From sequence record LC819005.1: a DNA stretch of 64,000 bases. One strand, given 5' to 3'. The translations under genes were made by a program, and so were the position numbers. Under the pieces are notes generated by a model. That model did no database searches, had not been told where the DNA came from, and was given only the letters and a program-made list of their open reading frames with translations. This document shows positions 3,313-38,514 of the stretch, one piece after another; position 1 is the first letter of the stretch, and every line of letters starts with the position of its first letter.

Positions 3313-3400
3313 TGGTGGAGAAGGTTGGATTCGAACCAACGTAGGCACTAAGGCCAACAGATTTACAGTCTGCCCCCTTTAGCCACTCGGGCACCTCTCC
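3313..3400 (-). tRNA. trnY: tRNA-Tyr(GTA)
   Basis: Cloverleaf with long variable arm; anticodon arm GCAGA-CTGTAAA-TCTGT; encoded CCA. Confidence 0.95.
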
Positions 3401-3415
3401 GATACTTCTGAAACT

Positions 3416-3491
3416 TGGCTCCGAAACCTGGGCTCGAACCAGGGACCCTCACCTTAACAGGGTGGCGCTCTACCGACTGAGCTATTTCGGA
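3416..3491 (-). tRNA. trnN: tRNA-Asn(GTT)
   Basis: 76-nt cloverleaf; loop CTGTTAA; encoded CCA; C27-A43 mismatch. Confidence 0.95.
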
Positions 3492-3508
3492 TCTACTACA
3501 GGAAAACG

Positions 3509-3585
3509 TGGCGCGGCGTAGGGGACTTGAACCCCTGACCCCTGGCGTGACAGGCCAGTACTCTAACCAGCTGAGCTAACACCGC
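3509..3585 (-). tRNA. trnD: tRNA-Asp(GTC)
   Basis: Anticodon arm CTGGC-CTGTCAC-GCCAG; encoded CCA. Confidence 0.95.
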
Positions 3586-3600
3586 AAACTACAAAACTGA

Positions 3601-3677
3601 TGGCAGAGAGGGAAGGATTCGAACCTTCGCATGTCGGAATCAAAATCCGATGCCTTAACCAACTTGGCGACCTCCCT
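3601..3677 (-). tRNA. trnQ: tRNA-Gln(TTG)
   Basis: Anticodon arm TCGGA-TTTTGAT-TCCGA; encoded CCA. Confidence 0.95.
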
Positions 3678-23086: not shown

Positions 23087-23122
23087 AGCGAGCACCGGCT
23101 AGAAATATTCACATAGGATTTG

Positions 23123-23160
23123 CGTCATAAAAGCCGGGGTCTCCCCCGGCCCTTATGCCG
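23123..23160. terminator. Symmetric hairpin + TATG element
   Basis: GCCGGGG/CCCCGGC stem with TTATGCCG on + and TTTTATGACG on -. Confidence 0.7.
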
Positions 23161-23167
23161 TCAAACC

Positions 23168-23821
23168 TTAGACGTCGAGCGTTGCCGGAATGGCCGGCAG
23201 TTCTGCGAGCGTCGTTGCCGCGTCAATCTCCGACTTCAGCGCCCAGCTCGCGCCGTACACTGCGGACACGCGCTGGAAGGCCGCGTTCGACATAGCAACC
23301 ACGCCATTGGCCGAAACCTGCACGACCTTGTTTTCCAGCGTACGGAAAGGCAGCAACGCATCGCCCTGACCTGCTGCGATCATGCCATCAGCCGTCACGC
23401 GCAGACCCGTGATGTTGATACAGTCACGGTCACGCAGCTGCACGCCTTGTACGCCATCTTCACCACCGAAGTCGTACTGGAAGCCGTTAGCCAGCGTGGT
23501 GTCGCGCAGTGTATCGACTTGCGCCGACAGCGTCGGTTTCTGAGCTGCGAGTTGAGCTGCGAGTTCGTCCGCGGAGAAAGCACGGGCGGTCCATTGCTGG
23601 GTCCACACGCCTTCCACTTGAACCGGCGCTGCTTCGGCCACCACATCGCCCGTCGGTTGAGCGGTCGGAGCAACCACAGCGTAGCCGAGGTCTTCGATGA
23701 TCGTTTCATCGGGTTCCGCAGCAAAGCTGGTGTTCGGATTGTCCTGGCGGATCTTGAACAACGACACCGGATAGTCCAGTGTGTCGACCTTGATCAGCAA
23801 GGTGCTTGCAGTGATGTTCAT
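23168..23821 (-). CDS. Tail fibre assembly chaperone (DUF4376-like)
   Basis: N-terminal NPNTSF...LGYAVV...W.Q.W and C-terminal LRDTTLANGF...QLRDRD...SWALKSEIDAA; directly downstream of the fibre. Confidence 0.75.
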   Translation of the reverse strand: MNITASTLLIKVDTLDYPVSLFKIRQDNPNTSFAAEPDETIIEDLGYAVVAPTAQPTGDVVAEAAPVQVEGVWTQQWTARAFSADELAAQLAAQKPTLSAQVDTLRDTTLANGFQYDFGGEDGVQGVQLRDRDCINITGLRVTADGMIAAGQGDALLPFRTLENKVVQVSANGVVAMSNAAFQRVSAVYGASWALKSEIDAATTLAELPAIPATLDV

Positions 23822-23872
23822 CTCTTTATTCCTGATGGGTGCGGGACGAGCCGAAGCCCGCCCCTAGGTTAC

Positions 23873-26800
23873 TTAGGCAGTTGCGCCCACCGAGCCCGTC
23901 CACTTCGTACCATCCCAGAGCAGGATGACGTTGGTGTACGTTGCGCCCAGCGTCGGAGCCGTACCGCCGCTCCAGCTGATGGTCGGCCAGGTGATCGCTG
24001 CGGCATTACCCGTCACGCACACCACGACCGTCATCGCACGGTTGGCACCCGGTGCGTTAGCAAACGCGAGAGTCTTGGCCGTAGCCGCGCTCACCGTGAA
24101 TGCCTGGTTCACAGCCAGGTCCAGCGTCGCCGTTGCAGCAGCAATCGGCAAGTCGTAACGGTCCAGGCGCTTCAGACCGATCGTCGTGCCGTTGTTGTAC
24201 GCAACGTAGTAGGCGCTGTCGTTCGGCGCCAGCGGCGTCGCGAGCGTAGCAAGGTCAGTCCAGTTGCCACCCTTCTGCACGTAAGCCTTGGTGTCGTTCG
24301 GAGCAGCGACCGTGGTAAGCGTCGACAGATCCGTCCAGTTACCACCCTTTTGAACATAGGCTTTCGTATCGTTCGGGGCTTTCGAATCGGTGAGCGTCGA
24401 AAGGTCAACCCAAGCGCCAGTCTTTTGGACATACGCTTTGGTATCATTCGGTGCAGGGGTTTGCGTGACCGTAGCCGCGTCCACCCAGGCACCACCCTTC
24501 TGCACATAGGCCTTCGAGTCATTCGGAGCGAGTGCCGTAGCGAGGGTCGCGAGATCAGTCCAGTTTCCGCCCTTTTGGACGTACGCCTTCGCATCATTCG
24601 GTGCCTGCGCTTGCTGAACCCATGCGCCATCCTTACGGATGTACACACCGTGATCCAGCGGAGCCTCACCCACGACCGGTGCCGGCAGCGGCACCCATGC
24701 GCCGTTCTCACGAACGTACATGGTGTCATCGAGGTTGGCGTCGTACACGTTACCGCCACCCAGGAAGCCGAGCCAGCTCCAGGCCACCGTGGTGGTTTTC
24801 TGGAAGAAGCGCAGCGTCGAGCTGTTGAGGAAGTAGTCGCCCACCACCCCGTCAGCCGGGTTCGGATCGCGACCGAGCACAATCCAGCGCGTGCCTTGGT
24901 CACCACGATCACCCTTCAGACCCTGGATACCCTGTACGCCCTGCAGACCTTGCAAGCCCTGCAGACCGCGATCACCCTTGGGACCCTGAATCAGACCCAC
25001 ATCGATGAACGCCGTGCCCGTCCACGCCCAACCATGCAGCGTGTCGGAAGCGATGTACATGTCGCCAGCGTTGGTCGCCGAACCCGGCAGAGCCGAGCTG
25101 GTAGCCACCGTACCGAGGATCTTCACGCCCGGGCCCATTGCACCCGTATCGCCTTGGTCGCCCTTGTCGCCCTTGTCGCCTTTCAGACCTTGAATACCCT
25201 GGATACCTTGCAGACCTTGGTCGCCTTGCAAACCTTGCAGACCCTGATCGCCCTGGTCACCCTTCCATTGACCTGCGTCAACCCAGACCGTACCGTTCCA
25301 CGACCAGAGATGACCTGCTACCGTCCAGGCGTCGCCTGCGGTGTTGCCAGTAGCCGGAAGACTGCCAGTATCGGGCTTGGTGCCGAGGACCTTGACGTTG
25401 GCACCAGTATCACCCTTGTCGCCCTTATCCCCCTTCACGCCTTGGATACCTTGAATGCCTTGGAGACCGGTGTTACCCGTGTCACCCTTATCACCCTTGT
25501 CTCCTTTAACGCCTTGAATACCCTGCAGACCCTGATCGCCCTTCGGACCTTGAATCATGCCGAGGTCTTCGAACGCAGCACCCGTCCAGCCCCAGAAATG
25601 GCCCTGGATCAGGTAACCATCACCAATGGCTTCGGTGGTGTGTGCGGGCAGCTGCGAGGAATCCGCAAACGTACCGAGAATTTTGATACCCGGACCAAGG
25701 TCACCCTTCACACCTTGAACACCCTGAATACCCTGAATCCCTTGGATACCCTGGTCGCCCTTGTCTCCCTTATCGCCTTTATCGCCCTTGACACCCTGAA
25801 TACCTTGGATGCCTTGGTCACCCTTCGGACCGATGAACGGACCGAGATCCTGCCACGCATTGCTGGAGAACAGGAACAGGTGCGTGCCGGCGATGTACGC
25901 GGTTTGATCCGGAGGCGTAGCGGGCAACGAAGCTTGATCTGCCACCGTGCCCGTGATCACGAGACCACGACCGGTCGGACCCGTCAGACCCGTGTCGCCC
26001 TTTGCGCCCTTGAGCGAAGCGAGCCACTGAGTCTGCGTACCCACGAAGCCGTTGTCGACTGCCGTCTGGTAAGCCGAATCACCTGCCACACCTTGGAGCG
26101 ACGCAAGCCATTGTGCTTGCGTACCAACAAAGCCACCAGCCACTGCCGCCGTATAAGCGGAGTCGCCGTTTGCACCCTTGTCGCCGGTGTCACCCTTGAC
26201 ACCTTGGATACCCTGCACACCTTGCAAGCCTTGCGGACCTTGCACGGGACCCACGTCGATGAACGCGGAACCGGTCCATGCCCAGCCGTGGAGCGTATCC
26301 AGGGCAATGTACATGTCACCAGCCGTACCCGAGCTGCCCGGGAGTGCTGCGCTGTTGGCAACGGTGCCCAGGATTTTCACGCCAGGACCCATCGGGCCGA
26401 CGTTACCTTGATCACCCTTATCACCCTTCGGACCTTGCGGACCGACGAGCGTAGCCAACCAGGCCGATTGCGAACCGACGAAGCCGCTGTCCAGCGCGAG
26501 CTGATACGCCGTCTTACCAACCAGCGATTGCAGCCAGGCAGCCTGCGTGCCAACGAAACCATTCGCCTGAGCGACTTGGTAGGCGGTCTTACCGTTGAGC
26601 GACGTGATCCACTGCGAGAGCGTCATCGTACCCGGGATCAGACCTGCATCCTTCGCGAGCTGGTAGGCCGACTTACCATCCGGACCCACTTGACCCACCG
26701 GCACCCAGCTCGTGCCGTCCCACACCCACATCACTGCATCGATGATGAACGCGTCACCTGCGGTGTTGCCTTCCGGACCCGGGGGGAGATCACCCACCGT

Positions 26801-27940
26801 CTGGAACGAACCCAGCACTTTCAGGCCGATACCATCCGAGCCGTGAAGCGAATCCATCCAGTCTTGTTCCGTGCCGCTGAAGCCCGCGAGCAGCGCGAGT
26901 TCATAGGCCGACTTACCTTCGGGCCCTTGCAGGTTACCGAGGTCCGTCCACACACCACCCGAGAGCGCCCAGAATTCCGGTCCGATCAGGTAGCAGTCAC
27001 CTTCTTGCGATTCGCCAACCGGCGGGAGCGACGCTTGGTCACCCACTGCGCCGAGCAGACGTGCGCCATTGCCCATCGGGCCTTGCGGGCCTGCAGCACC
27101 ATCAGCGCCGTCATCGCCCTTCGGACCCTTGAGTGAGGCCAGGTACTCGGCTTGCGTACCCACGAAACCGCCAGCGACGGCCAGTTCGTAGGCGGACTTG
27201 CCGTCCGTACCATTCGTACCGTTCGTGCCATCAGCGCCCTTCGCGCCGGTGTCACCCTTGACACCCTGGTTGCCTTGCAGGCCTTGAATACCTTGAATGC
27301 CCTGATCGCCCTTCACGCCTTTCAGCGAGGCAACCCAGGCAGATTCAGAGCCGACAAAACCACCAGCGACAGCCGACTCATACGCCGACTTACCAATAGC
27401 GCCGTCAGCGCCGTTGGTGCCGTTCGTACCGTCATGACCGTCCGCACCCTTCAGGCTAGCCAACCACTGCGCTTGCGTTCCGACAAAGCCGCCCAGTACA
27501 GCGAGTTCATAAGCGCTCTTACCCGCTGCGCCATCCGAACCGCTCGTACCGGTATCGCCCTTGTCACCTTTGTCACCTTTAAGACCTTGGATACCTTGGA
27601 TACCCTGGTCTCCCTTGGCGCCGACAAGGCTGGCAAGCCACTGGGCTTGCGTGCCGCCATAACCACCGGCTTGCGCCAGTTCGAAAGCGGATTTGCCATT
27701 CGTACCATCGGCACCTTTGGCACCGACCAGCGACGCAAGCCATTGAGCCTGCGTGCCGCTATAGCCGCCGTCAACGGCGACCTGGTAAGCGGATTTACCC
27801 GCCACCATCAACTGCGCCAGGGTGAACTTAACGTTCTTGCCACCCTGGATGGCCTCGACCACTTCCGCACCAGTGATGGCTGCTGCGTCAGGGAGGTCAG
27901 AGATCCGGTAATACAGTGCGGGATCGAGTGTATCACTCAT
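23873..27940 (-). CDS. Long collagen-like tail fibre protein (fibre A, 1355 aa)
   Basis: Gly-X-Y runs, GKSAYxxA...WLASL linkers, ~45-aa knob modules, 25-aa APND repeats and a C-terminal tip domain. Confidence 0.9.
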   Translation of the reverse strand: MSDTLDPALYYRISDLPDAAAITGAEVVEAIQGGKNVKFTLAQLMVAGKSAYQVAVDGGYSGTQAQWLASLVGAKGADGTNGKSAFELAQAGGYGGTQAQWLASLVGAKGDQGIQGIQGLKGDKGDKGDTGTSGSDGAAGKSAYELAVLGGFVGTQAQWLASLKGADGHDGTNGTNGADGAIGKSAYESAVAGGFVGSESAWVASLKGVKGDQGIQGIQGLQGNQGVKGDTGAKGADGTNGTNGTDGKSAYELAVAGGFVGTQAEYLASLKGPKGDDGADGAAGPQGPMGNGARLLGAVGDQASLPPVGESQEGDCYLIGPEFWALSGGVWTDLGNLQGPEGKSAYELALLAGFSGTEQDWMDSLHGSDGIGLKVLGSFQTVGDLPPGPEGNTAGDAFIIDAVMWVWDGTSWVPVGQVGPDGKSAYQLAKDAGLIPGTMTLSQWITSLNGKTAYQVAQANGFVGTQAAWLQSLVGKTAYQLALDSGFVGSQSAWLATLVGPQGPKGDKGDQGNVGPMGPGVKILGTVANSAALPGSSGTAGDMYIALDTLHGWAWTGSAFIDVGPVQGPQGLQGVQGIQGVKGDTGDKGANGDSAYTAAVAGGFVGTQAQWLASLQGVAGDSAYQTAVDNGFVGTQTQWLASLKGAKGDTGLTGPTGRGLVITGTVADQASLPATPPDQTAYIAGTHLFLFSSNAWQDLGPFIGPKGDQGIQGIQGVKGDKGDKGDKGDQGIQGIQGIQGVQGVKGDLGPGIKILGTFADSSQLPAHTTEAIGDGYLIQGHFWGWTGAAFEDLGMIQGPKGDQGLQGIQGVKGDKGDKGDTGNTGLQGIQGIQGVKGDKGDKGDTGANVKVLGTKPDTGSLPATGNTAGDAWTVAGHLWSWNGTVWVDAGQWKGDQGDQGLQGLQGDQGLQGIQGIQGLKGDKGDKGDQGDTGAMGPGVKILGTVATSSALPGSATNAGDMYIASDTLHGWAWTGTAFIDVGLIQGPKGDRGLQGLQGLQGVQGIQGLKGDRGDQGTRWIVLGRDPNPADGVVGDYFLNSSTLRFFQKTTTVAWSWLGFLGGGNVYDANLDDTMYVRENGAWVPLPAPVVGEAPLDHGVYIRKDGAWVQQAQAPNDAKAYVQKGGNWTDLATLATALAPNDSKAYVQKGGAWVDAATVTQTPAPNDTKAYVQKTGAWVDLSTLTDSKAPNDTKAYVQKGGNWTDLSTLTTVAAPNDTKAYVQKGGNWTDLATLATPLAPNDSAYYVAYNNGTTIGLKRLDRYDLPIAAATATLDLAVNQAFTVSAATAKTLAFANAPGANRAMTVVVCVTGNAAAITWPTISWSGGTAPTLGATYTNVILLWDGTKWTGSVGATA
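24200..24660 (-). repeat. Coding tandem repeats of ~75 bp (APNDxKAYVQKGGxWxDL)
   Basis: Five near-complete 25-aa units plus degenerate flanking copies in fibre A. Confidence 0.9.
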
Positions 27941-27963: not shown

Positions 27964-28512
27964 TCAGGAAACCGGCTTTTCGAGCACGCGAATGCGACGC
28001 TTTTCATCAGTCGGGATGTTACCGTCGACATTCCGAGCGGACGGCTGCTTGGAGTTTGGTGCGTAGGGGAAAAAGTAATCCCCCGGCAACCACGCGAGAG
28101 ACGTGGAAGTAATCGTCAACGTAAGTCCATTGACCGGAATGCTGTCAATAGCGGCATCCACGACTTCGTCCGCCACGAGATCCAAGCCGAGCCCCGCATT
28201 GATCTGCGGCAGGATGGCATGAATGGTCGTGGGGAAGCTCATGGGATCGAAGGGGACCAACTCCCCTTCCGGTAGTCGGCTGAGCGCATCCATGCTCAAC
28301 CGCTTGTAGTTCACATCCTTCGGCGGGTCACGACGAGTCGTAGTGTAGGCCGTGGCAGGAACCGTTGTCGAACCAGCAACTGGATCGGGACCCGCAGACG
28401 GGGTCCCGAAGTCGAAGTTGACAGCACTCGGCAACACCGGCGTCTGGGCTTTACGGATCAGTTGTGACAGGCGCACCTGGCTCGTGCCCTGATAAGGCTT
28501 GATACGAGACAT
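27964..28512 (-). CDS. Putative virion structural / baseplate-associated protein
   Basis: Start reassigned to MSRIKPYQG; YKRLSMDAL...ILPQINAGLGL...SLAWLPG; in the tail module. Confidence 0.65.
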   Translation of the reverse strand: MSRIKPYQGTSQVRLSQLIRKAQTPVLPSAVNFDFGTPSAGPDPVAGSTTVPATAYTTTRRDPPKDVNYKRLSMDALSRLPEGELVPFDPMSFPTTIHAILPQINAGLGLDLVADEVVDAAIDSIPVNGLTLTITSTSLAWLPGDYFFPYAPNSKQPSARNVDGNIPTDEKRRIRVLEKPVS

Positions 28513-28633
28513 ATTTGACCTTGTCGGCTTGGTGGAAAAAACAAAACGACTCGTTTGGCAAACGAGTCGCCAATTAAGTCTATAAAATTGCGGCAAAAAA
28601 ATACAGGACCAGGTTACCCCAGTCCTGTATCGG

Positions 28634-29047
28634 TTACGGCTTCTCGATCTCGGTGACCGGCGCACTCAGAATCGCGGTAACACGATCTTCAGTGAGCAGG
28701 TTTTCGGAGACAAAGAACTCCAGGCCTGCTTTGACATCCGGATCTTCCAGGTCGATGAACTTCGCCAGCGTCAGACGATCGTAGATCGCCCGCGCCATTG
28801 AGTTCGTCTGTACAGCACCCAGAATGGTAGCGTGCTCTTGCAACGTGAAGCGACGCACCAGCGCCAGGGTCGAGACCTGACGAGAAAGTGTGCCCTGCAT
28901 CCCACTGATTTCAGCAGTCGCCCAAGCCTGAGCGGTTTCTGCATCAGCCCACGGTTCTTGCGTGTTGGGGTCAAGCGGTTGATCGCGCATCACAACACCA
29001 TCCCTGAGAATGGTGAGCGTGCCGTCTTTAAATTCAAAGGTGTACAT
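28634..29047 (-). CDS. Putative fibre chaperone / tail-associated small protein
   Basis: QPLDPNTQEPWAD...ALVRRFTLQE...FIDLEDPDV...LLTEDRVTAIL resembles fibre-associated small phage proteins. Confidence 0.65.
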   Translation of the reverse strand: MYTFEFKDGTLTILRDGVVMRDQPLDPNTQEPWADAETAQAWATAEISGMQGTLSRQVSTLALVRRFTLQEHATILGAVQTNSMARAIYDRLTLAKFIDLEDPDVKAGLEFFVSENLLTEDRVTAILSAPVTEIEKP

Positions 29048-29059
29048 GCTGCTCTCTGG

Positions 29060-29590
29060 TTAGCGCCATCTGAATGACGGCGGAACGACGGTGCCGCCAC
29101 CGCCTCCTGTGAACGACCCCATCTGGGCGTACGAAACTGCAGTCTTCCGGTCGTGCTGGCCGTCCTTACGCAAACCAGTAGCATGGGCTTTGGCCTTAGC
29201 CGTGGTCACGAAAGGACGCGAGGTAGCCGATACGGGCGGATTGGGATTAGCAAAGGACCGAGCAGACTTGTGGTCGTGCGGCCGGCCCTTCAGCTGCATC
29301 GCGTGAGACTTAGCGATCCGCTTAGTCGTGTAGCTGCGCTGGTTAGCCGTTGCTTTGGCTCGACCAAACACACTGACCTTCGCTTTTGCTGTAGCCCGCA
29401 CCGGAGGTGCTTTCACAGCCCCCGGATTGAAGGTTGCGACCCGCTTGAAAAAAGCAGGCGCAATCTTTGGCACGATCATCGAAGCATTGGTAAAGCCACT
29501 CGCGTAGCTTTTGCCGCGCTTCTTGACAGGGTCCGATTTCGTCGCGCCCGGATTAAACGAGGCGGTTACCGAAACTCGGATTCCGTTCAT
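29060..29590 (-). CDS. Highly basic Lys/Arg/Ala-rich hypothetical protein
   Basis: 176 aa; ATGA-coupled to the upstream gene; very few acidic residues. Confidence 0.6.
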   Translation of the reverse strand: MNGIRVSVTASFNPGATKSDPVKKRGKSYASGFTNASMIVPKIAPAFFKRVATFNPGAVKAPPVRATAKAKVSVFGRAKATANQRSYTTKRIAKSHAMQLKGRPHDHKSARSFANPNPPVSATSRPFVTTAKAKAHATGLRKDGQHDRKTAVSYAQMGSFTGGGGGTVVPPSFRWR

Positions 29591-31272
29591 GTCCAGGCAT
29601 CCACCGAGAGATCACCAGGACCCGTGATCGTGAACGGCACCAGCGTCGGACCGGCAGTCGTCGTCTGGATCTGCGAGGACGAGAGCGTCATATTCGCTGT
29701 CGGCGAGAGGTTCACTGTGGCCGCGATAAACGCACCGTTGATGTCCTTCACCGCTACCGACAGGTTGCCCTGTACCGGACCACCCGTGAAGTTGTAGTTG
29801 TTGCTGTCGAACGACACGGAGATCGTGTTGACCTGACCCGGCGGCGAGTAGAAGTTCAACCCCAGCTCACAGAAGACCGTGGGCTTGGCTGAGTCCGGTG
29901 TGATGTACCAGAAGCGCCCGGTGCTGTCGAACCCGTACGGCTCCGCTTCCCACCACTGGCTTGCGTTGTTGCGTTGCACGTAGACGCTGTCGACCTTCGA
30001 CAACACGCCTGCTGCACCCATCGACCAGAATTCGTAACGATCGTCGTAGACCATCACGAAACGCATGTTCGAATCGTCCGAACCCAGGAATGAACGCGGA
30101 CCCGGCGCCAGCTGATACGTGCCGAGATACTGGGCCGTGTTCTTGTCGCTGAGTTTGTAGACGTACATCGTCGCGGTCGCACCGTTCGGCACGTTGCCGT
30201 AGGGCTCCAGACCAAACACCAACAGGTACTTGTTGCCGTCCGTGTGACTGACGAGCACGATACGTGCAGCCGTCGGCGTACCGGTCGTGCCTTGTAGCGT
30301 CATCGGGTTCTGGTCCAGCGTCACCAGGTTGTTGCTGACCGTCGGTGTACCGTTCACCCCGCTGATCTGCACCCGGTGGATTTCCATGGTCCCGGACGTA
30401 CGCCACAGCACGTAGCTGGACAACTCGTTGACGTCGCTGGCGTAAGCATACGACGGGGCTGAGTTAGCGTAGCCAAGACCAATCGCTCCAACCGCACCCG
30501 CGCCTGCCGGCACAGCCATACCCGCATTGATCGTCGTGAGCGCCAGCGTCGATTTCAACACAGCGTGGACTGCGATCTGCGTTGCCTGCTGAGACGAACT
30601 GGCATTGATACCCAGGAAGTACCAGCGCAGGTTCTCATCATTGATCCGGTAGTGATACTGGATTGCGGTGCCAATCGGCGTGTGGCTACCGATCACTAAG
30701 CCGGTGGTGCCCGCTGTGACTGAACCGGCCGGATAGGATTCGAGTGCAGAGCAGCCGCCGTTGGCATTGCTATAACGCAACATGCCAATCCAGCCACCTG
30801 GCCCGGGTGGCAGCCAGGCAGTCAGTTCGTTACCGCCGTTGATGCCAGTGACAAACGCGTTTTCTGAATTGGTAATCACACCTGTTTCGGTATCCGCGTC
30901 GATCACGAGGTTATCCGAGCTAGCAGCCAGCATCTGACGAAAGCGCGTCGAGTCGAGCCACAGACCCGATGTTGTCACGCCCGCCCAGTTACCGCATAGC
31001 GCGACATCCATGTCATCCAGCTGGGTGTGAGGCGTGCCAGCATTAAGGTTGGCGTTGCGAGTCTGGGGCTGATAGCCGCGTTTCAGACGCATCGACCAGA
31101 CGGAGGTCCCGCCATTCGCACGGTAGTAGTTGTTAGCCGGAATCGCGGTCTTACCCACCAGCTCACTCAAGTCGCTGGTCCGGTAGACGTGGCCGTTGAT
31201 GTGGAGCTTGTCGTTAAACTCCTGGATGAGCTTACCTGGCGCCATCCCTTTGTAATTGATAAGTCTTGGCAT
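29587..31272 (-). CDS. Putative tail-tip protein, beta-rich
   Basis: 561 aa immediately downstream of fibre B; beta-propeller-like composition (inference). Confidence 0.65.
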   Translation of the reverse strand: MPRLINYKGMAPGKLIQEFNDKLHINGHVYRTSDLSELVGKTAIPANNYYRANGGTSVWSMRLKRGYQPQTRNANLNAGTPHTQLDDMDVALCGNWAGVTTSGLWLDSTRFRQMLAASSDNLVIDADTETGVITNSENAFVTGINGGNELTAWLPPGPGGWIGMLRYSNANGGCSALESYPAGSVTAGTTGLVIGSHTPIGTAIQYHYRINDENLRWYFLGINASSSQQATQIAVHAVLKSTLALTTINAGMAVPAGAGAVGAIGLGYANSAPSYAYASDVNELSSYVLWRTSGTMEIHRVQISGVNGTPTVSNNLVTLDQNPMTLQGTTGTPTAARIVLVSHTDGNKYLLVFGLEPYGNVPNGATATMYVYKLSDKNTAQYLGTYQLAPGPRSFLGSDDSNMRFVMVYDDRYEFWSMGAAGVLSKVDSVYVQRNNASQWWEAEPYGFDSTGRFWYITPDSAKPTVFCELGLNFYSPPGQVNTISVSFDSNNYNFTGGPVQGNLSVAVKDINGAFIAATVNLSPTANMTLSSSQIQTTTAGPTLVPFTITGPGDLSVDAWT

Positions 31273-31368
31273 TGCAAAATTCTCTCTTGATGAAACGAGG
31301 CGCTCGTTGGAGAGACGAGCGTTTGAGGGGAAAGAGGTCCAGCCATAGGATGACGGGACCCCTCATGA

Positions 31369-34227
31369 TCACTTGTAGTCGAACGTCAGCACCAGATCGT
31401 TACCACCTGTTCCTACAATCTGCAGGGAAATTGCGTAGCCTGGTTGCAACGAATTCGACAACTGGATGTAGTCGTTTGAGCTACCGGATGAAATCGGCAG
31501 CGAGACGGTTTCACTGAAGCCATCGCCGTGGCTGATGAAAATATTCAGAATCAGGTCCACCGGACTCGGCGTACCCAGCTGAATCCGGATACCCGTGAGC
31601 ATCGAAGCATCGGCAGGCGGATACCAGGGCACCGCAGTCGTCAACGGCGAGATCTTGCCATCGAAGGCAGCCATTTTCTGGCGAGTCGCTGTCGGGATTT
31701 CTACCAGCAACCATTCCCCATTCTTGCGAACGTAGGTGCCGTTATCCTTCGGGGCTTCCAAGACGTCAATCGGCACCCACTCGCCATCGAGCCGGGCCTT
31801 GGGAATGCCGTCCGGGTTGGCATCGTAGACGTTACCTCCGCCCAGATACCCCACCCAGCTCCACGTCACGTTACTGGTCTTTTGAAAGAACCGCAACGTG
31901 TCAGAGTTCAGGTAGTAGTCGCCAGGCAATCCGTCGACTGCATTGGGGTCACGACTCAACACGATCCAGCGGTTACCGGTATCGCCTTTGACCCCTTGAA
32001 TCCCCTGCACCCCCTGGATGCCTTGAATCCCCTGGATACCTTGTGCGCCACGATCACCCTTTGCCCCTTGGATTGGGCCCACGTCAGTGAAGCCCGCACC
32101 GGTCCAAGCCCAACCATGCAAGGTGTCCTGAGCAATGTACATATCGCCCAGATTCGTAGCGCTACTCGGCAAGTCACCGCTGGTCATCACCGTGCCAAGA
32201 ATCTTGACTCCCGGCCCCATCGGACCCGTGTCGCCAGTATCCCCTTTCGCACCTTTGTCCCCAGCGTTGCCTTGAGGGCCGAGATCCCCCTTGTCTCCTT
32301 TATCTCCCTTATCCCCTTTGATACCTTGGGCGCCTTGCAAGCCTTGAATGCCTTGCACACCCTGCGCGCCCTGCAGACCCTGAATCCCTTTGTCCCCTTT
32401 CTCGCCCTGGTCACCTTTCGGGCCACGGACGTCACCGGCGTCAACAAAGAACGTGCCGTTCCAGCTCCAGAGGTGGCCGTTGATCAGATAGCTGTCGCCT
32501 TTGTTGGCAGCGCTACTGGGCAACTGACTCGGATCAGTGAAGGAACCCAGGACAACAAAGCCAGGACCGATGGGGCCTTCGGGACCGATATCGCCTTGGT
32601 CACCTTTTACCCCTTGTTCGCCCTGATCTCCTTTGTCGCCTTTGTCTCCTTTAACACCCTGAATCCCTTGCTCACCTTGTTCACCCTGTTCGCCTTGAGG
32701 ACCACGAACCGGACCAGCATTGGTCCAGCCTGTAGGGGTGTTGATGTAGAGATCTGTGCCGATGACATAGGCATCGTCGATTGCTGCGTCAGTCGGCAGG
32801 GAAGCGGTGTCCGGGACTGTGCCGAGAATCGCAAGACCGCGACCCATAGCGCCCTCAGGACCGGCTGGGCCTGACGGACCAATGTCACCCTTGTCGCCTT
32901 TGAGTGAAGCCAGCCACGAGGCCATATCGCCGACGTAGCCTGCGTCTACAGCCAACTGGTAAGCGGATTCTCCGTTCTTACCATTCAGTGTTGCCAACCA
33001 CTGAGTCTGTGTACCAGCAAAGCCTGCGGCAACAGCGAGTTGATAGGCGGAGTCACCCTTCGCTCCCGTATCGCCCTTATCACCTTTGACCCCTGCCGTG
33101 CCGTCAGCACCAGTGTCACCCTTAGGACCGCGAATGACTCCGAGGTCTTCAAAGGCTTCGCCTGTCCAGCCCCAGAAATGATCGTCGATCAAGTAACCGT
33201 CACCGATCGCATCCGCTGTTTCAGGCAACGCACTGGAATCATCCAACTTACCCAGGATCTTGATCCCTGGCCCCAGATCACCCTGATCGCCTTTCTCACC
33301 CTTAGGTCCTTGGTCACCCTTGAGTCCAGTGAGTGAAGTCAACCACTGAGCTTGCGTGCCTTGGAAACCATTGGCCACTGCGACATCAAAGGCGCTCTTA
33401 CCCGAGATCGAGGCCAGCCACGAGAGCTGGTCCCCCGAGAAGCCGTTGGCCTGCGCAACTTGATACGCCGACTTCCCGTTCAATGAAGTAATCCACTGGG
33501 ACAGGGTCATCGACGAGGAAATCAATCCAGCGTCTTTGGCCAACTGGTAAGCCGACTTACCCGGAGCACCGACCTGACCCACTGGAGACCACTGGTTGGT
33601 GTCCCAGACCCACATGGTCGAGTCGATGATATACGCATCACCCGACTTGTTATCGAAGTTGGGCAAATCCCCAATAGCGTGGAACGAACCCAGCACTTTA
33701 AGACCAATGCCGTCTGAGCCGCGCAGCGACGCCAACCAGTCTTCTTCGTTACCCTGAAAGCCTGCTACCACCGCCAGCGAGTAGGCACTCTGGCCATCCG
33801 GCCCCTGCAGGTTACCCAGGTCGCGCCACTCTCCCGCAATCATCGCGTAGAAGTGGGAGTTGACCAGATAACAGTCACCTTCATCAGTTTCCGTGGGATC
33901 AGGCAGATCAGCCACAGCCTGCACTGCACCCAAGAGTCGAGCACCGTTACCCATGGGTCCCTGCGAGCCAGTGTCGCCCTTGGTGCCCTTCTCACCAGCC
34001 GGACCATGCAGACTGGTCAGCCACGCTTCGAGATCTCCCTCGAACCCGTTCTCTACCGCCAAGTCGTAGGCGTTCTTCCCCAGGACCTTCAGCTGAGCTA
34101 AAGTGAACTTGACGTTCTTCCCGTTTTGAATTGCTTCGACGACTTCTGTGCCATCGACGGTTGAGGCATCGGGTAGATCGGAGATCCGGTAATACAACTC
34201 TGAATTGACAGATGGATCATCGCTCAT
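31369..34227 (-). CDS. Second collagen-like tail fibre (fibre B, 952 aa)
   Basis: Start MSDDPSVNSELYYRISDLPDA; N-terminus, linkers and knobs paralogous to fibre A; different C-terminal domain. Confidence 0.9.
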   Translation of the reverse strand: MSDDPSVNSELYYRISDLPDASTVDGTEVVEAIQNGKNVKFTLAQLKVLGKNAYDLAVENGFEGDLEAWLTSLHGPAGEKGTKGDTGSQGPMGNGARLLGAVQAVADLPDPTETDEGDCYLVNSHFYAMIAGEWRDLGNLQGPDGQSAYSLAVVAGFQGNEEDWLASLRGSDGIGLKVLGSFHAIGDLPNFDNKSGDAYIIDSTMWVWDTNQWSPVGQVGAPGKSAYQLAKDAGLISSSMTLSQWITSLNGKSAYQVAQANGFSGDQLSWLASISGKSAFDVAVANGFQGTQAQWLTSLTGLKGDQGPKGEKGDQGDLGPGIKILGKLDDSSALPETADAIGDGYLIDDHFWGWTGEAFEDLGVIRGPKGDTGADGTAGVKGDKGDTGAKGDSAYQLAVAAGFAGTQTQWLATLNGKNGESAYQLAVDAGYVGDMASWLASLKGDKGDIGPSGPAGPEGAMGRGLAILGTVPDTASLPTDAAIDDAYVIGTDLYINTPTGWTNAGPVRGPQGEQGEQGEQGIQGVKGDKGDKGDQGEQGVKGDQGDIGPEGPIGPGFVVLGSFTDPSQLPSSAANKGDSYLINGHLWSWNGTFFVDAGDVRGPKGDQGEKGDKGIQGLQGAQGVQGIQGLQGAQGIKGDKGDKGDKGDLGPQGNAGDKGAKGDTGDTGPMGPGVKILGTVMTSGDLPSSATNLGDMYIAQDTLHGWAWTGAGFTDVGPIQGAKGDRGAQGIQGIQGIQGVQGIQGVKGDTGNRWIVLSRDPNAVDGLPGDYYLNSDTLRFFQKTSNVTWSWVGYLGGGNVYDANPDGIPKARLDGEWVPIDVLEAPKDNGTYVRKNGEWLLVEIPTATRQKMAAFDGKISPLTTAVPWYPPADASMLTGIRIQLGTPSPVDLILNIFISHGDGFSETVSLPISSGSSNDYIQLSNSLQPGYAISLQIVGTGGNDLVLTFDYK

Positions 34228-34311
34228 CTTTCTCACCCTGAAAAATAAATAGAAAAAGGTAGACCCTACCTTTTTATCCATAGAATTTGAGTTAAAAAAT
34301 ACAGGGTAAGT

Positions 34312-34361: not shown

Positions 34362-35588
34362 TTAGAAGCCGAGGTCGATGTCCGCGCCGATCACTTCCTT
34401 CGACACGTTCTCGGTGGAGACGACGTTGACCAGGTACTGGTTGTTGTCCTGCTCTTGCGGCGACTTCTGGTTCTCGTTGATGTCGATCCAGTCACGCATG
34501 TAGTTCAGCGGGAGTTGGGACGGCATCGTGACACCCAGCTGCGTTTCGACTTCGTGCAGGATACCGAACGAGATACAGACTGCGCGGCCATTGAACAACG
34601 TCCAGTCCTTGAGCTTCGCCACCGTGACGCCCGGCAGCTCATCGCCGTCGGAGTGCAGGTAATCCACCCAGTTCATTTCACCCGTGAGCACCTCGCACAC
34701 CGCAGCGATTAGGATCGGACGGATTACTGCGAATGCAGCGCGACCCCACGGTGTCGCCATCAGGTGCTTGAACACCGCTTCGCCGAACGGCACGTGGTTG
34801 GTGTACTCGTCACGGCAGATGGACTGCACCGCTGCACCGATCGGCTCGAACAGGCTCATCTCGCAGATCGCGAACGTCACGGCGAACGAGGCCATGAACT
34901 GGATACGTTCCAGCATGTACACTGCAGCGATCAACAGCACGACCGCTTGTTCGATCTCTGGCGTACGGACACCCGTGGTCTGCCATTCCAGCGAAGCGAG
35001 ACGGGCACGCTCCATGATCCGGCCAACGGCTGCCATGCGACCGTGTGCTTCACGCACAGCCAGGATTTCGTTCAGAATCACCGACGGATCGTCGAACGAG
35101 CCGCGCACGATTTCCGAGTAGGTCATCGCGTGCAGGTTTTCGTTGTCGATGATACGACCATAGCCGACGCGGGACTCCGTTGCCGTACAGAGCGGAATCA
35201 ATACGTCTGCCAAGCCACGAGCAGCCGTGCTGTCGCCTTCCCACTGCCAGGCGAGGGTACGGATCATCATCCGGTAGATCGACGGGCTACAGGTCTTGAA
35301 TTGCGCCACACACAGCGAGTAGTCGAACTCGTTGTGCTTCCAGTCACTCGCCTTCAGCTCTTCGAAGAGCGAGAAGAGATCCGGATAGGCCATGTGGATC
35401 GTATCGAGCAGGCCGCCCGGCTGGCCCAGGAACAGTTCGGGCTTCTGGTAGTCGTTCTTGTTGACGTTGAAGATGCGCGTGGAAAGCTGTTCACCGCGCT
35501 GCGCTAGCGTCAGGTCGACGTACCCGGCGCGTTCGAGCGCTTCACGACCCGCATTGGTGATCACGATGTTGTTTGCGTTTTCGGACAT
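34362..35588 (-). CDS. nrdB: Ribonucleotide reductase class Ia beta subunit
   Basis: Di-iron ligands and radical Tyr: WEGDS, NENLHAMTY, MLERIQF, RDEYTNH; start reassigned to MSENANN. Confidence 0.92.
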   Translation of the reverse strand: MSENANNIVITNAGREALERAGYVDLTLAQRGEQLSTRIFNVNKNDYQKPELFLGQPGGLLDTIHMAYPDLFSLFEELKASDWKHNEFDYSLCVAQFKTCSPSIYRMMIRTLAWQWEGDSTAARGLADVLIPLCTATESRVGYGRIIDNENLHAMTYSEIVRGSFDDPSVILNEILAVREAHGRMAAVGRIMERARLASLEWQTTGVRTPEIEQAVVLLIAAVYMLERIQFMASFAVTFAICEMSLFEPIGAAVQSICRDEYTNHVPFGEAVFKHLMATPWGRAAFAVIRPILIAAVCEVLTGEMNWVDYLHSDGDELPGVTVAKLKDWTLFNGRAVCISFGILHEVETQLGVTMPSQLPLNYMRDWIDINENQKSPQEQDNNQYLVNVVSTENVSKEVIGADIDLGF

Positions 35589-35727
35589 GTTCTTACTGAG
35601 AGATGGGAGGTGAATGAGGTCTGCTTCATGCGATACTGAAGACCAGTATTTTCTCATCCAAGAAATTCGAGGGCATAAACAAGGAAGAGGCGAACCCCTC
35701 CCTTGTCTAGTGCTTACTGCTTACCGC

Positions 35728-38514
35728 TTACAGCTTGCAGGCGCCACCACCGCACGCGTCTTCCTGTTCGGATTCCACGTACTCCACGTCCGGCATGGTG
35801 TACAGCTTGATCCATGCTTCCGTGTTCCAGACGTGCCAGCTGTTGCCGATCAGATAGCTGTCGCCGAATTCGTCACCCGAGGTGGGCAAGTCACCGACAC
35901 GCGCTACCGTACCGCGGAACTTCACGAGACAGTCCGTACCGAAGAGTTCACGTGCTACTGCGAACTTCTCTTCCGCTTCCGCGTAAGCTGACGGCTGCTT
36001 CACTTCAAACGACACGGCGTCTCCCGACGCTGCTTTGCTGATTGCCAGTGCAGCAATTTCTTTTGCACCCGGCGCGTAACCCGGAATGCCGCCACTGCTC
36101 AGATCCAGCGGAGGTTGCTTGGCACTGAAGTCGTGATCAGCCGGAAGCAGTGCCTTCACGACCTTGCTTTCTGCCGCCACTGCCGCGATCACGTGTTCCG
36201 CATCATTCGCCGCTGCTGCTTCCGTGGCTTTCGCCGCTTCTGCCGCACCCGGAATCTTGTCCACCAACGAAACCGCCGCCGCCGTATCCTTGACCTTCGG
36301 ACGCAGCGTGTTGGTGTAGTAGCGGCTCTTCATACCCCGCATGATCATGTACAGGAAATTCCGAACCACTTCTTCTTCCGAGACCTTCGTCTCACCCGAC
36401 TTGAACTTGCGATACAGGTCAGCCGAGATGCCCTGGTCCGTCCACTTCTGCATCACTGCGTAGCAGTCGATCAGGTCTTCGGTTGCGATGTCCCATGCCG
36501 ATTGATACGCGTCGCCGAGGATGTCGCCATCCACCGCCGCCCAACGGATCATGTTGTTGTCGCCATCGCCCTTGGTGATCACCACCGAACGGATCGGGTA
36601 GACCGAGTTGGTCGAACCCAACGCCTTCGAGGACGATTCGCCCGGCATCATGGACGACAGCACGCTGTGACCGAGCCCGCCGTTGTCGATCAGTTGCTGC
36701 TTCACAGCAGCCCAGTCGTACACGTTCTCGAACGATGCGATCTTGTCGACGTTCTTGTTGTACGTATCGAGCGGCGTCCAGCCTTCCGGCCACTTCGTCT
36801 TGTGCATCCACGGCGCAACACCACGCTCCTTCGAGATCTTGATCGAAGCCTGGATCAGGAAGTACATGTGACGTTCGAACACACGGTGAATTTCCTGCTT
36901 GCCTTCCACCGTATCCCAGCGCAGACCCTTGCGCGCCATGTGCGTGGCCAGACCCATGATACCGACGCCGGCGTTCATCCGTTGCTTGGCCGTATAGGCC
37001 AGGTGCGGGAACGGGTACTTGCCGTTCAGAACCGTGAAGTCGATCATCTTCAGCGCGTAGTAGCAGGCGTCGAAGTAGTCGGCGTCATCCGTGATGTTCT
37101 CGATCGGGATCGCGGCCAGGTTACACATGGCGATTTCGCCACGGCCGTGATCTTCGTAGCTGTACAGATCGCGCATGTCGTAGTACGGGGCCTGGATCTC
37201 GAAGATTTCCTGGCACAGGTTCGACGAATGGATGCGATGCGTCGGCGTGATCTTGAACGGCGTGTGACGGTTCGCTTCGTGGATGTTCGTCAGGTACGCC
37301 GTACCCGTGTCGAACGCTTCCGCGAACGAGTGCAGCACCAGCTTACGCGCCGAAATGTACTTCTTCGGGAACAGCGGATCGTTCTCGTACTTGTTGTACA
37401 GTTCGACGAAGCCCTTGATGTCGTCCGAGAAGAACTTGTCGAAGAGATCCGGCGCCGAGAACTTCGTGAACGTGAAGATGTCTTCCGACTTCTGCACCTT
37501 CGCCGCGAACCACGGATTCACCAGCATCGAGAAGTGCAGTTCGCGCAGCTGCTTGTCCGCCGGTTGCAGCGGATTGCGGTATTGCACGATGTCCACAGCT
37601 TCCGGATCGAATGCGGAGAAGCTCGTCGTTCCAGCACCAGCACGGGCAGCTTGCTTGTTCGCGATGGTCGCTTCAGCATTGGCTTTGTAGTAGCGATACT
37701 TACCTGCGTGCTTGACACGGCCCTTGGCAACCGGGTCGCCGACGGTGCGCGTGTTGATGAACGAACCGAGCCCAGCCGAGTTCACGGTCATTTTGTACGC
37801 AATGTGGTCGCCAATCGCGAGCGACTCCGCGTCGTCGTCCGACGTGAAGATGCAGCACGAGGCGTAACCGTTGTGCGTCGAGCCCAGGTACAGGTAGTTC
37901 GGCGTCGGTGCCGAGAGCTTCTTGCCCGAGAGCTTTTCGTAGAACTTGCGCACGTGCATCATGCGCTGAGCCTTCGGCTCTTTCTCGGCGAGTTGCATCG
38001 CCATACGCATGTACAGGTGCTGCGGCGTTTCGAAGATCTCGCCGGTGGCGTGATTGCGAATCGCGTACTTGTCACGGATCTGCTTCAGCGCAAATTCCGG
38101 ATAGAAGAAATCCCGGGTATGGTCGATGATCGATTCGATCTTCGCGTATTCTTCACGCGAGTAGTTCAGCTTGCACATCAGGCCCAGTTCTTCGCTGGCC
38201 AGGCGCGTGTGTTGTTCGTAGACGGTCGGCGGGGTGATGCTGCCGTAGACGTCCTTGCGGTACACGGTCGCAAACAGGCGTCCGGCCATCAAATACGCAG
38301 GCCACGTCCGGATTGCGAGCAACTCTTCGATCAGCGCGAGCATCAGTTCACGCGTGGAGGCCTTCTCGGGTAGCTTCGCGACAGCGGCCAGCGCCGCTTG
38401 AGACCAGTCCACACGGTTCGAAAGGTGATTGGCGGCCCATTCGCCCCAGCCATTCAGCTTGCCTGGGATCATAGGCTCTTCAGAGCCATTTCGCTTGATA
38501 AGAGTCTGCAACAT
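35728..38514 (-). CDS. nrdA: Ribonucleotide reductase class Ia alpha subunit with C-terminal insertion
   Basis: LSAPTP, YASCC, SSNLCQEI, AMCNL, KSRYY and terminal ACGGGACKL. Confidence 0.95.
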   Translation of the reverse strand: MLQTLIKRNGSEEPMIPGKLNGWGEWAANHLSNRVDWSQAALAAVAKLPEKASTRELMLALIEELLAIRTWPAYLMAGRLFATVYRKDVYGSITPPTVYEQHTRLASEELGLMCKLNYSREEYAKIESIIDHTRDFFYPEFALKQIRDKYAIRNHATGEIFETPQHLYMRMAMQLAEKEPKAQRMMHVRKFYEKLSGKKLSAPTPNYLYLGSTHNGYASCCIFTSDDDAESLAIGDHIAYKMTVNSAGLGSFINTRTVGDPVAKGRVKHAGKYRYYKANAEATIANKQAARAGAGTTSFSAFDPEAVDIVQYRNPLQPADKQLRELHFSMLVNPWFAAKVQKSEDIFTFTKFSAPDLFDKFFSDDIKGFVELYNKYENDPLFPKKYISARKLVLHSFAEAFDTGTAYLTNIHEANRHTPFKITPTHRIHSSNLCQEIFEIQAPYYDMRDLYSYEDHGRGEIAMCNLAAIPIENITDDADYFDACYYALKMIDFTVLNGKYPFPHLAYTAKQRMNAGVGIMGLATHMARKGLRWDTVEGKQEIHRVFERHMYFLIQASIKISKERGVAPWMHKTKWPEGWTPLDTYNKNVDKIASFENVYDWAAVKQQLIDNGGLGHSVLSSMMPGESSSKALGSTNSVYPIRSVVITKGDGDNNMIRWAAVDGDILGDAYQSAWDIATEDLIDCYAVMQKWTDQGISADLYRKFKSGETKVSEEEVVRNFLYMIMRGMKSRYYTNTLRPKVKDTAAAVSLVDKIPGAAEAAKATEAAAANDAEHVIAAVAAESKVVKALLPADHDFSAKQPPLDLSSGGIPGYAPGAKEIAALAISKAASGDAVSFEVKQPSAYAEAEEKFAVARELFGTDCLVKFRGTVARVGDLPTSGDEFGDSYLIGNSWHVWNTEAWIKLYTMPDVEYVESEQEDACGGGACKL

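Follow-up and report, generated by a model that had tools for sequence, protein, structure and literature searches.

A homologue of a phage tail-fibre module in the C-terminal redox arm of a jumbo phage ribonucleotide reductase

The nrdA locus and its enzyme

The stretch of DNA analysed here, hereafter the window, comprises 64,000 nucleotides of the 290-kb genome of the Ralstonia jumbo phage FLC1-1B (LC819005.1; window base 1 is record base 124001). On its reverse strand (-), at positions 35728..38514 with the stop codon included, lies nrdA, which encodes the 928-residue class Ia-type alpha subunit of ribonucleotide reductase (RNR). The main result of the analysis is that the long C-terminal tail of this protein holds a homologue of a repeated module of phage tail fibres just upstream of its terminal redox cysteines, as an earlier note on this DNA, made from the sequence alone, had claimed. 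The small-subunit gene nrdB (34362..35657, -; Pfam Ribonuc_red_sm PF00268, E-value 6e-18) follows immediately downstream, as it does in all relatives examined. Two genes for collagen-like tail fibres stand on the same strand: fibre B (31369..34281, -), with the Pfam Collagen family, six copies of the module and matches to the tail-fibre families 3904 and 15437 of PHROG, and fibre A (23873..27940, -), with Pfam Collagen and Fibritin_C, seven copies of the module and foldon-like repeats at its C-terminus. The proximity of nrdAB to fibre genes, to which the same note had drawn attention, is seen not just in FLC1-1B: FLC4-3B, RP12 and the P0001 contig share it, usually with a DUF7941 gene in between. 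Phages of the FLC1-1B/RP12 type are phiKZ-related jumbo phages (PMC5468394, PMC11530567), and identity to FLC1-1B over the nrdA region amounts to 98.5% in FLC4-3B and to about 80% in RP12 and RP31 (genus Ripduovirus).

The FLC1-1B record names the nrdA product a 'putative ribonucleoside-diphosphate reductase'. Pfam places Ribonuc_red_lgN (PF00317) at residues 137-214 (E 1e-16) and Ribonuc_red_lgC (PF02867) at residues 218-733 (E 1e-79), and the alignment with Escherichia coli R1 (4r1r; E 4e-104) covers R1 residues 7-735 and ends at residue 737 of the phage protein. Compared residue by residue, NrdA keeps the active-site Cys/Asn/Cys/Glu/Cys motifs and the YY radical-transfer pair, the roles of which are well established in E. 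coli R1. On sequence grounds, NrdA looks like a complete and intact class Ia-type alpha subunit. Over residues 5-104 (38200-38514, -) the protein can be aligned with the regulatory N-terminus of E. coli R1, yet the Pfam ATP-cone goes unmatched at E-values up to 1; the ATP-cone may be degenerate, as in the phiKZ-type relatives.

Parts of the C-terminal tail

The KSRYY motif occupies residues 729-733, ACGGGACKL closes the chain, and the tail past the YY pair is 195 residues long. The NrdA proteins of phiKZ and PS119XW, the nearest outside the clade that carries the insert (55% identity), end about 30 residues past the YY motif with a C-x4-C pair and nothing in between. Because these tails are so short and the alignment with E. 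coli R1 stops at residue 737, some 160-165 residues of the FLC1-1B tail are extra, and the estimate of about 170 between KSRYY and ACGGGACKL in the earlier note was thus right.

The first part of the insert is an Ala-rich linker (residues 742-842, with 28 Ala in 101 residues; 35989..36291, -), which is absent from the NrdA proteins of phiKZ and PS119XW. It is conserved only at its start (SLV..IPGAAEAA), and against RP12 it differs in length by 39 residues and is 45% identical. GC content at third codon positions (GC3) is 0.59 in the linker, 0.70 in the module, 0.80 in the catalytic core and 0.77 in nrdB, a dip that is repeated in RP12 and P0001. A predicted helix follows at about residues 841-859 (35938..35994, -), sharing residues 841-842 with the linker; AlphaFold2 places it in both of the models described below with a predicted local distance difference test score (pLDDT) of 57-77, and its residues F851, A854 and F858 are invariant across the five NrdA tails compared. 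A helical 'SAY' repeat of the fibres was considered as the source of this helix and rejected, a hidden Markov model (HMM) of the SAY repeat giving no match to NrdA.

The module itself, 43 residues long and predicted to form four beta strands, spans residues 863-905 (35800..35928, -), almost exactly where it had first been noticed (about 35800-35930), and is delimited by an HMM of fibre modules, by PHROG profiles and by AlphaFold2. Between it and the cysteines lies an acidic arm (residues 906-920; 35755..35799, -), recognised in alignments by its core motif EYVESEQ[ED]DA, which is invariant in all five lineages that carry the insert; the arm is absent from phiKZ-type tails and is predicted to be disordered (AlphaFold2 pLDDT from below 50 to 66). 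The tail closes with the redox pair C921-x4-C926 in CGGGACKL (residues 921-928; 35731..35754, -), which in phiKZ and PS119XW has equal spacing and likewise stands at the extreme C-terminus. Arm and Cys pair together are 95% identical to those of RP12. There are three cysteines in the tail in all, the third of which, C862, is not conserved in RP12 or in the metagenome fragments P0006 and P0013. Pfam finds no family in the last 187 residues of NrdA at E-values up to 1.

Homology of the tail module to a fibre repeat

In the two fibres of the window, a repeat of about 43 residues alternates with collagen runs. An HMM was built from 11 of the fibre copies only (profile length 43), leaving NrdA out, which amounts to the comparison that the earlier note had proposed. 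In a six-frame scan of the window, this profile scores NrdA residues 866-902 at 32.4 bits (domain E 3e-9) over its positions 4-40, and the best unrelated open reading frame (ORF) outside the fibres reaches 5 bits. Applied in six frames to the whole 290-kb genome, the profile returns fibre A, fibre B and NrdA only, the latter with an E-value of 4e-9. The two PHROG tail-fibre families that rank first for both fibres, 15437 and 3904, independently match residues 121-163 of the NrdA tail, with E-values of 1e-4 and 1e-3.

Searches from the NrdA side lead back to fibres. With the last 75 residues of NrdA as query, tblastn finds annotated tail fibres of Erwinia, Serratia, Burkholderia, Ralstonia and Escherichia phages, including many jumbo and rV5-like phages. 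With the last 100 residues, phmmer retrieves 120 proteins at E-values up to 1e-3 from 1.84 billion representatives, nearly all of them fibre proteins with multiple copies of the module, and the fibres are matched at E-values down to 1e-67. Collagen runs are present in 98 of 122 proteins (the 120 matches plus two NrdA relatives); NrdA itself has none. The note had called the module a knob, a label that has to be given up, since in the fibres it is an in-line unit between collagen runs and not a terminal knob.

The module is widespread in metagenomic phage fibres (P0003-P0122), often with 5-13 copies per protein, and proteins devoid of collagen runs contain it too, for instance together with an Mtd_N or a PTR domain. 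In plasmids, the module yielded two marginal Lactobacillales matches only. Neither the fibres nor the NrdA tail match PF03406 or PF06820 (Phage_fiber_2 and Phage_fiber_C, the Pf2 and PfC of prophage collagen-like proteins) at E-values up to 1, and at the same threshold the NrdA tail has no match to Fibritin_C (PF07921). A relationship of the module to the foldon-like repeats was likewise considered and rejected, hhalign giving it a probability of 5% with the window sequences.

The last 100 residues of NrdA were modelled as a monomer with AlphaFold2 from two alignments, one including fibre modules and one, as a control, restricted to five NrdA tails. The model with fibre sequences predicts a helix at residues 843-858 and four strands within residues 865-906 at pLDDT above 90, with low confidence over the last 22 residues. 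The NrdA-only control predicts identical elements, with pLDDT of 81-87 over the module, dropping below 50 over the arm, and across both models the helix spans query residues 13/15-30. When compared by Foldseek with BFVD, both models match phage tail-fibre and collagen-repeat proteins, the RP12 fibre included, and the NrdA-only model has 12 matches at E-values up to 1e-3. The NrdA module is therefore predicted, from models, to share a four-stranded beta fold with the fibre modules. By sequence profile, the PDB returns nothing significant, with weak similarities to villin/gelsolin repeats and to the DUF2793 protein 8rk3.

A resemblance arising by chance or convergence might be suspected of a stretch so short and so rich in Gly, Trp and Asp, for which PDB searches find no significant match, and yet it is extremely improbable. 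A profile of fibre copies only singles out NrdA and nothing else outside the fibres in 290 kb, independent PHROG profiles agree with it, the reverse search recovers fibres at very low E-values, and the fold predicted from NrdA sequences alone agrees with the fibre models. The NrdA stretch is a true homologue of the fibre module, far above chance.

Distribution of the fusion and selection on its parts

The fused architecture is found in five lineages: FLC1-1B/FLC4-3B, P0001 (JGI and Logan contigs, matching a 283-kb IMG/VR contig), RP12/RP31, and the metagenome fragments P0006 and P0013, the tails of which are about 51-56% identical to that of FLC1-1B. All five have in common the order of a linker start SLV..[IV]PG, the module and EYVESEQ[ED]DAC..GACKL. 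The NrdA gene call of P0006 (L006/L017, MTEW01003993.1) begins at an internal Met of NrdA, leaving some 470 nt upstream outside the call. In searches for fused NrdA genes, IMG/VR yielded two loci, a metagenome scan one and a word-indexed search two. Alignment with the NrdA proteins of related phages, which had been suggested as a way of dating the insert, finds it present in these five lineages and absent from phiKZ and PS119XW. The fusion is rare and confined to a single small clade of Ralstonia-type jumbo phages related to phiKZ. An artefact of assembly, which would have undone the claim, is excluded because FLC4-3B, RP12, RP31, the IMG/VR contig and three independent metagenome contigs share the architecture.

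The ratio of nonsynonymous to synonymous substitution rates (dN/dS), calculated by the Nei-Gojobori method between FLC1-1B and RP12, is 0.15 in the catalytic core, 0.50 in the linker, 0.45 in the helix, 0.12 in the module and 0.03 in the arm with the Cys pair, the most conserved part of the tail; with dS saturated, 44 codons in the module and segments short in general, the values are rough and their ranking clear. The module evolves as slowly as the core while the linker drifts, which argues that the module is under selection and is not idle cargo. Several positions that vary among fibres are moreover invariant in the five NrdA copies (the S885-equivalent, G, V, N and T in GDS.L.G..W.VWN...W...T), and this pattern, read from the sequences, suggests a specific interface.

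These data bear directly on the idea, also voiced in the earlier note, that module and linker were a neutral insertion into a disordered tail, tolerated there with no function of their own. Such an origin would suit the linker well, with its poor conservation, its 39-residue length difference from RP12, its high dN/dS and its lower GC3, and class I tails are disordered and tolerant in general (PMC9669993). The module, in contrast, shows purifying selection of the same order as the enzyme body, it persists in five lineages with tail identities of only about 51-55%, and several of its positions are invariant in the NrdA copies alone. Tolerated cargo is hence disfavoured, and we regard it as improbable.

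Origin of the module and layout of the fibre genes

The homology of module and fibre repeat, together with the adjacency of their genes, had been taken to mean that NrdA captured the domain from the neighbouring fibre gene. This part of the claim finds no support, at least for a recent event. The fibre modules of FLC1-1B itself are 27-34% identical to the NrdA module and rank 98th to 476th by similarity to it among 517 modules, a set picked by similarity to NrdA and hence biased as a basis for ranks. At the DNA level, blastn finds a single perfect identity of 18 nt between the nrdA module and a module of fibre B (35848-35865 against 32482-32499), both segments encoding GDSYLI and neither matching in its flanks. 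Codon bias common to the two genes, or a trace of past gene conversion, may account for it. The similarity ranks and this lack of DNA similarity led us to reject a recent capture from the neighbouring fibre. The nearest modules to the NrdA copy belong to the unrelated metagenomic fibres P0062, P0121, P0114 and P0109, in some of which the likeness reaches into the preceding helix. Since the fusion predates the split of the five lineages, no donor fibre can be named.

The layout of the fibre genes varies. RP12 and the P0001 contig have nrdB, then the DUF7941 gene and a fibre gene, and in FLC1-1B and FLC4-3B fibre B, a 561-residue ORF and a 176-residue ORF (27964-34281, -) are interposed between nrdB and the DUF7941 gene, which points to a duplication or insertion of a fibre block in the FLC lineage. 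Fibre A ends in an array of seven tandem foldon-like repeats of about 25 residues each (residues 1067-1233; 24242-24742, -; consensus AP.D..AYVQKGG.W.DL; Pfam Fibritin_C E 4e-8), and fibre B contains a single such unit (residues 842-863; 31693-31758, -). The tandem array of foldon-like hairpins is unusual. Very long antisense ORFs run opposite nrdA (752 residues; 36115-38373, +) and opposite fibre A (1338 residues; 23120-27136, +), and most likely they are by-products of composition and collagen repeats rather than genes. Elsewhere in the window, the FLC1-1B record annotates four clustered tRNA genes (Tyr, Asn, Asp and Gln; 3313-3677, -, or record 127313-127677).

Possible roles of the module

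Given an enzyme that looks intact and a Cys pair that still stands at the end of the chain, the redox shuttle has most likely been retained, in which case the pair would still pass reducing equivalents to the active site. The redox arm would then be one lengthened by about 165 residues and composed of a flexible linker of some 100 residues, a short helix, the beta module, an acidic arm of some 15 residues and the C-x4-C pair, the long linker presumably giving back the reach lost to the folded module. In fibres, which are homotrimers, the module would have to sit three-fold, side by side, and the non-collagen domains of phage collagen-like fibres are trimerisation modules (PMC3368898). In NrdA, the same unit might bundle the tails of neighbouring alpha subunits, or it might dock the arm on a partner such as a reductant, and either arrangement would keep the redox cysteines locally concentrated close to the active sites. 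Because the module is selected and would natively lie three-fold, and because non-collagen domains of such fibres trimerise, self-association or docking seems the most economical reading. Our preferred view is hence that NrdA is a working class Ia-type alpha subunit with a lengthened arm in which the module serves as a node of self-association or docking, a view to which we incline tentatively and with somewhat less than even confidence, the role of the module being one that we infer.

Several points weigh against this preferred view. The alpha subunit of RNR is a dimer, for which a three-fold module would be geometrically awkward. The NrdA copies have neither the terminal Gly nor the flanking collagen of the fibre copies, and the saturation of dS, mentioned above, tempers the argument from selection. 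The module matches no solved structure, a search of the PDB by fold giving a best E-value of 1.2, and the lack of a match may mean that the module is too small and/or has no solved relative. Lastly, no thioredoxin or glutaredoxin gene is annotated in RP12/RP31 or FLC1-1B, where annotation is sparse and not all 313 proteins have been searched with profiles, and for want of an annotated redoxin a phage-encoded docking partner is not in sight.

The last point also tells against a narrower alternative, that module and acidic arm bind a thioredoxin, glutaredoxin or NrdH, either of the host or an unrecognised one of the phage, for efficient re-reduction of the Cys pair. The acidic arm beside the pair is the slowest-evolving part of the tail and is missing from phiKZ-type proteins, and the fusion of a redoxin domain to an RNR subunit is known in the case of NrdB (PMC6187632). 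Nonetheless, besides the lack of annotated redoxin genes, nothing ties this fibre module to redoxin binding, and we consider reductant docking unlikely.

On a further reading, which appears rather unlikely, the module has retained three-fold self-association and joins the long tails of different alpha dimers, building higher-order RNR assemblies or giving the enzyme a hold at a phage structure in these jumbo phages of the nucleus-forming type. If true, it would concentrate the synthesis of deoxynucleoside triphosphates (dNTPs) in one place and allow redox arms to be shared in trans, and it would be the first virion-fibre assembly module found to be reused to organise a metabolic enzyme. A more literal version, foreshadowed in the suggestion that the module tethers RNR to a structure, has it co-assemble with fibre chains or with another phage structure, which would attach RNR to virions or to a phage body inside the cell. 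That the module is otherwise part of fibres and that nrdAB lies beside fibre genes in four genomes or contigs would fit this proposal, as would the placement of RP12 among the nucleus-forming chimalliviruses (10.1101/2024.03.21.585822). Against it, the published virion proteome of RP31, with 32 proteins, lists the fibre (ORF150) and not NrdA (ORF153), leaving attachment to the virion unsupported, and the fibre modules of the same phage resemble the NrdA copy no more closely than foreign ones do. A tether of this kind is decidedly improbable.

More generally, the NrdA tail offers a natural test case of how far evolution can re-engineer a swinging redox arm, and also of whether the assembly modules of fibres can be reused to organise enzymes. 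The analysis further defines an unnamed module of about 43 residues, widespread among the collagen-like fibres of phages, for which there is no Pfam family and no solved structure.

Comparison with known systems

FLC1-1B NrdA agrees with the class Ia alpha subunits of E. coli (NrdA/R1) and of phiKZ-type phages in its domains, its catalytic residues, the YY pair, the terminal C-x4-C and the adjacent nrdB, and it differs from them in a tail of 195 residues instead of about 30, in which a beta module predicted to be folded is joined by a helix and an acidic arm of invariant sequence. Its likeness to the in-line module of fibres (PHROG 15437/3904; no Pfam family) covers 37 of 43 profile positions, with conserved G, LP, GD, W.W and W and four predicted strands; unlike the fibre modules, the NrdA copy is single, lacks collagen flanks, resides in a non-structural protein, has its closing Gly replaced and carries additional invariant residues specific to its clade. 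The T4 fibritin foldon (Fibritin_C) is likewise a small beta-hairpin trimerisation unit of phage fibres, and foldon-like repeats end both fibres of the window, whereas the NrdA tail has no Pfam match and its module shows no convincing profile-profile similarity to those repeats.

Accessory domains are known on other RNR subunits. In the glutaredoxin-NrdB fusion of Facklamia ignava, the added domain serves re-reduction (PMC6187632), but that domain can be recognised as a redoxin and sits on the beta subunit, whereas here a fibre module with no redox motif sits on the tail of alpha. The nearest known analogy to the NrdA tail is the zinc-finger and IscU-like C-terminal domains of class II RNRs, folded domains near a redox Cys pair for which positioning or oligomerisation has been proposed (PMC9669993, PMC5704485), even though they belong to another RNR class and another fold and the NrdA tail has no Cys4 metal site. 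Class I C-termini are normally disordered and carry the Cys pair, and reports of folded domains in C-terminal extensions are confined to class II (PMC9669993). A class I alpha subunit bearing in its redox arm a domain of the fibre repertoire that is predicted to be folded and is under selection thus represents a departure from the short disordered arms described so far.

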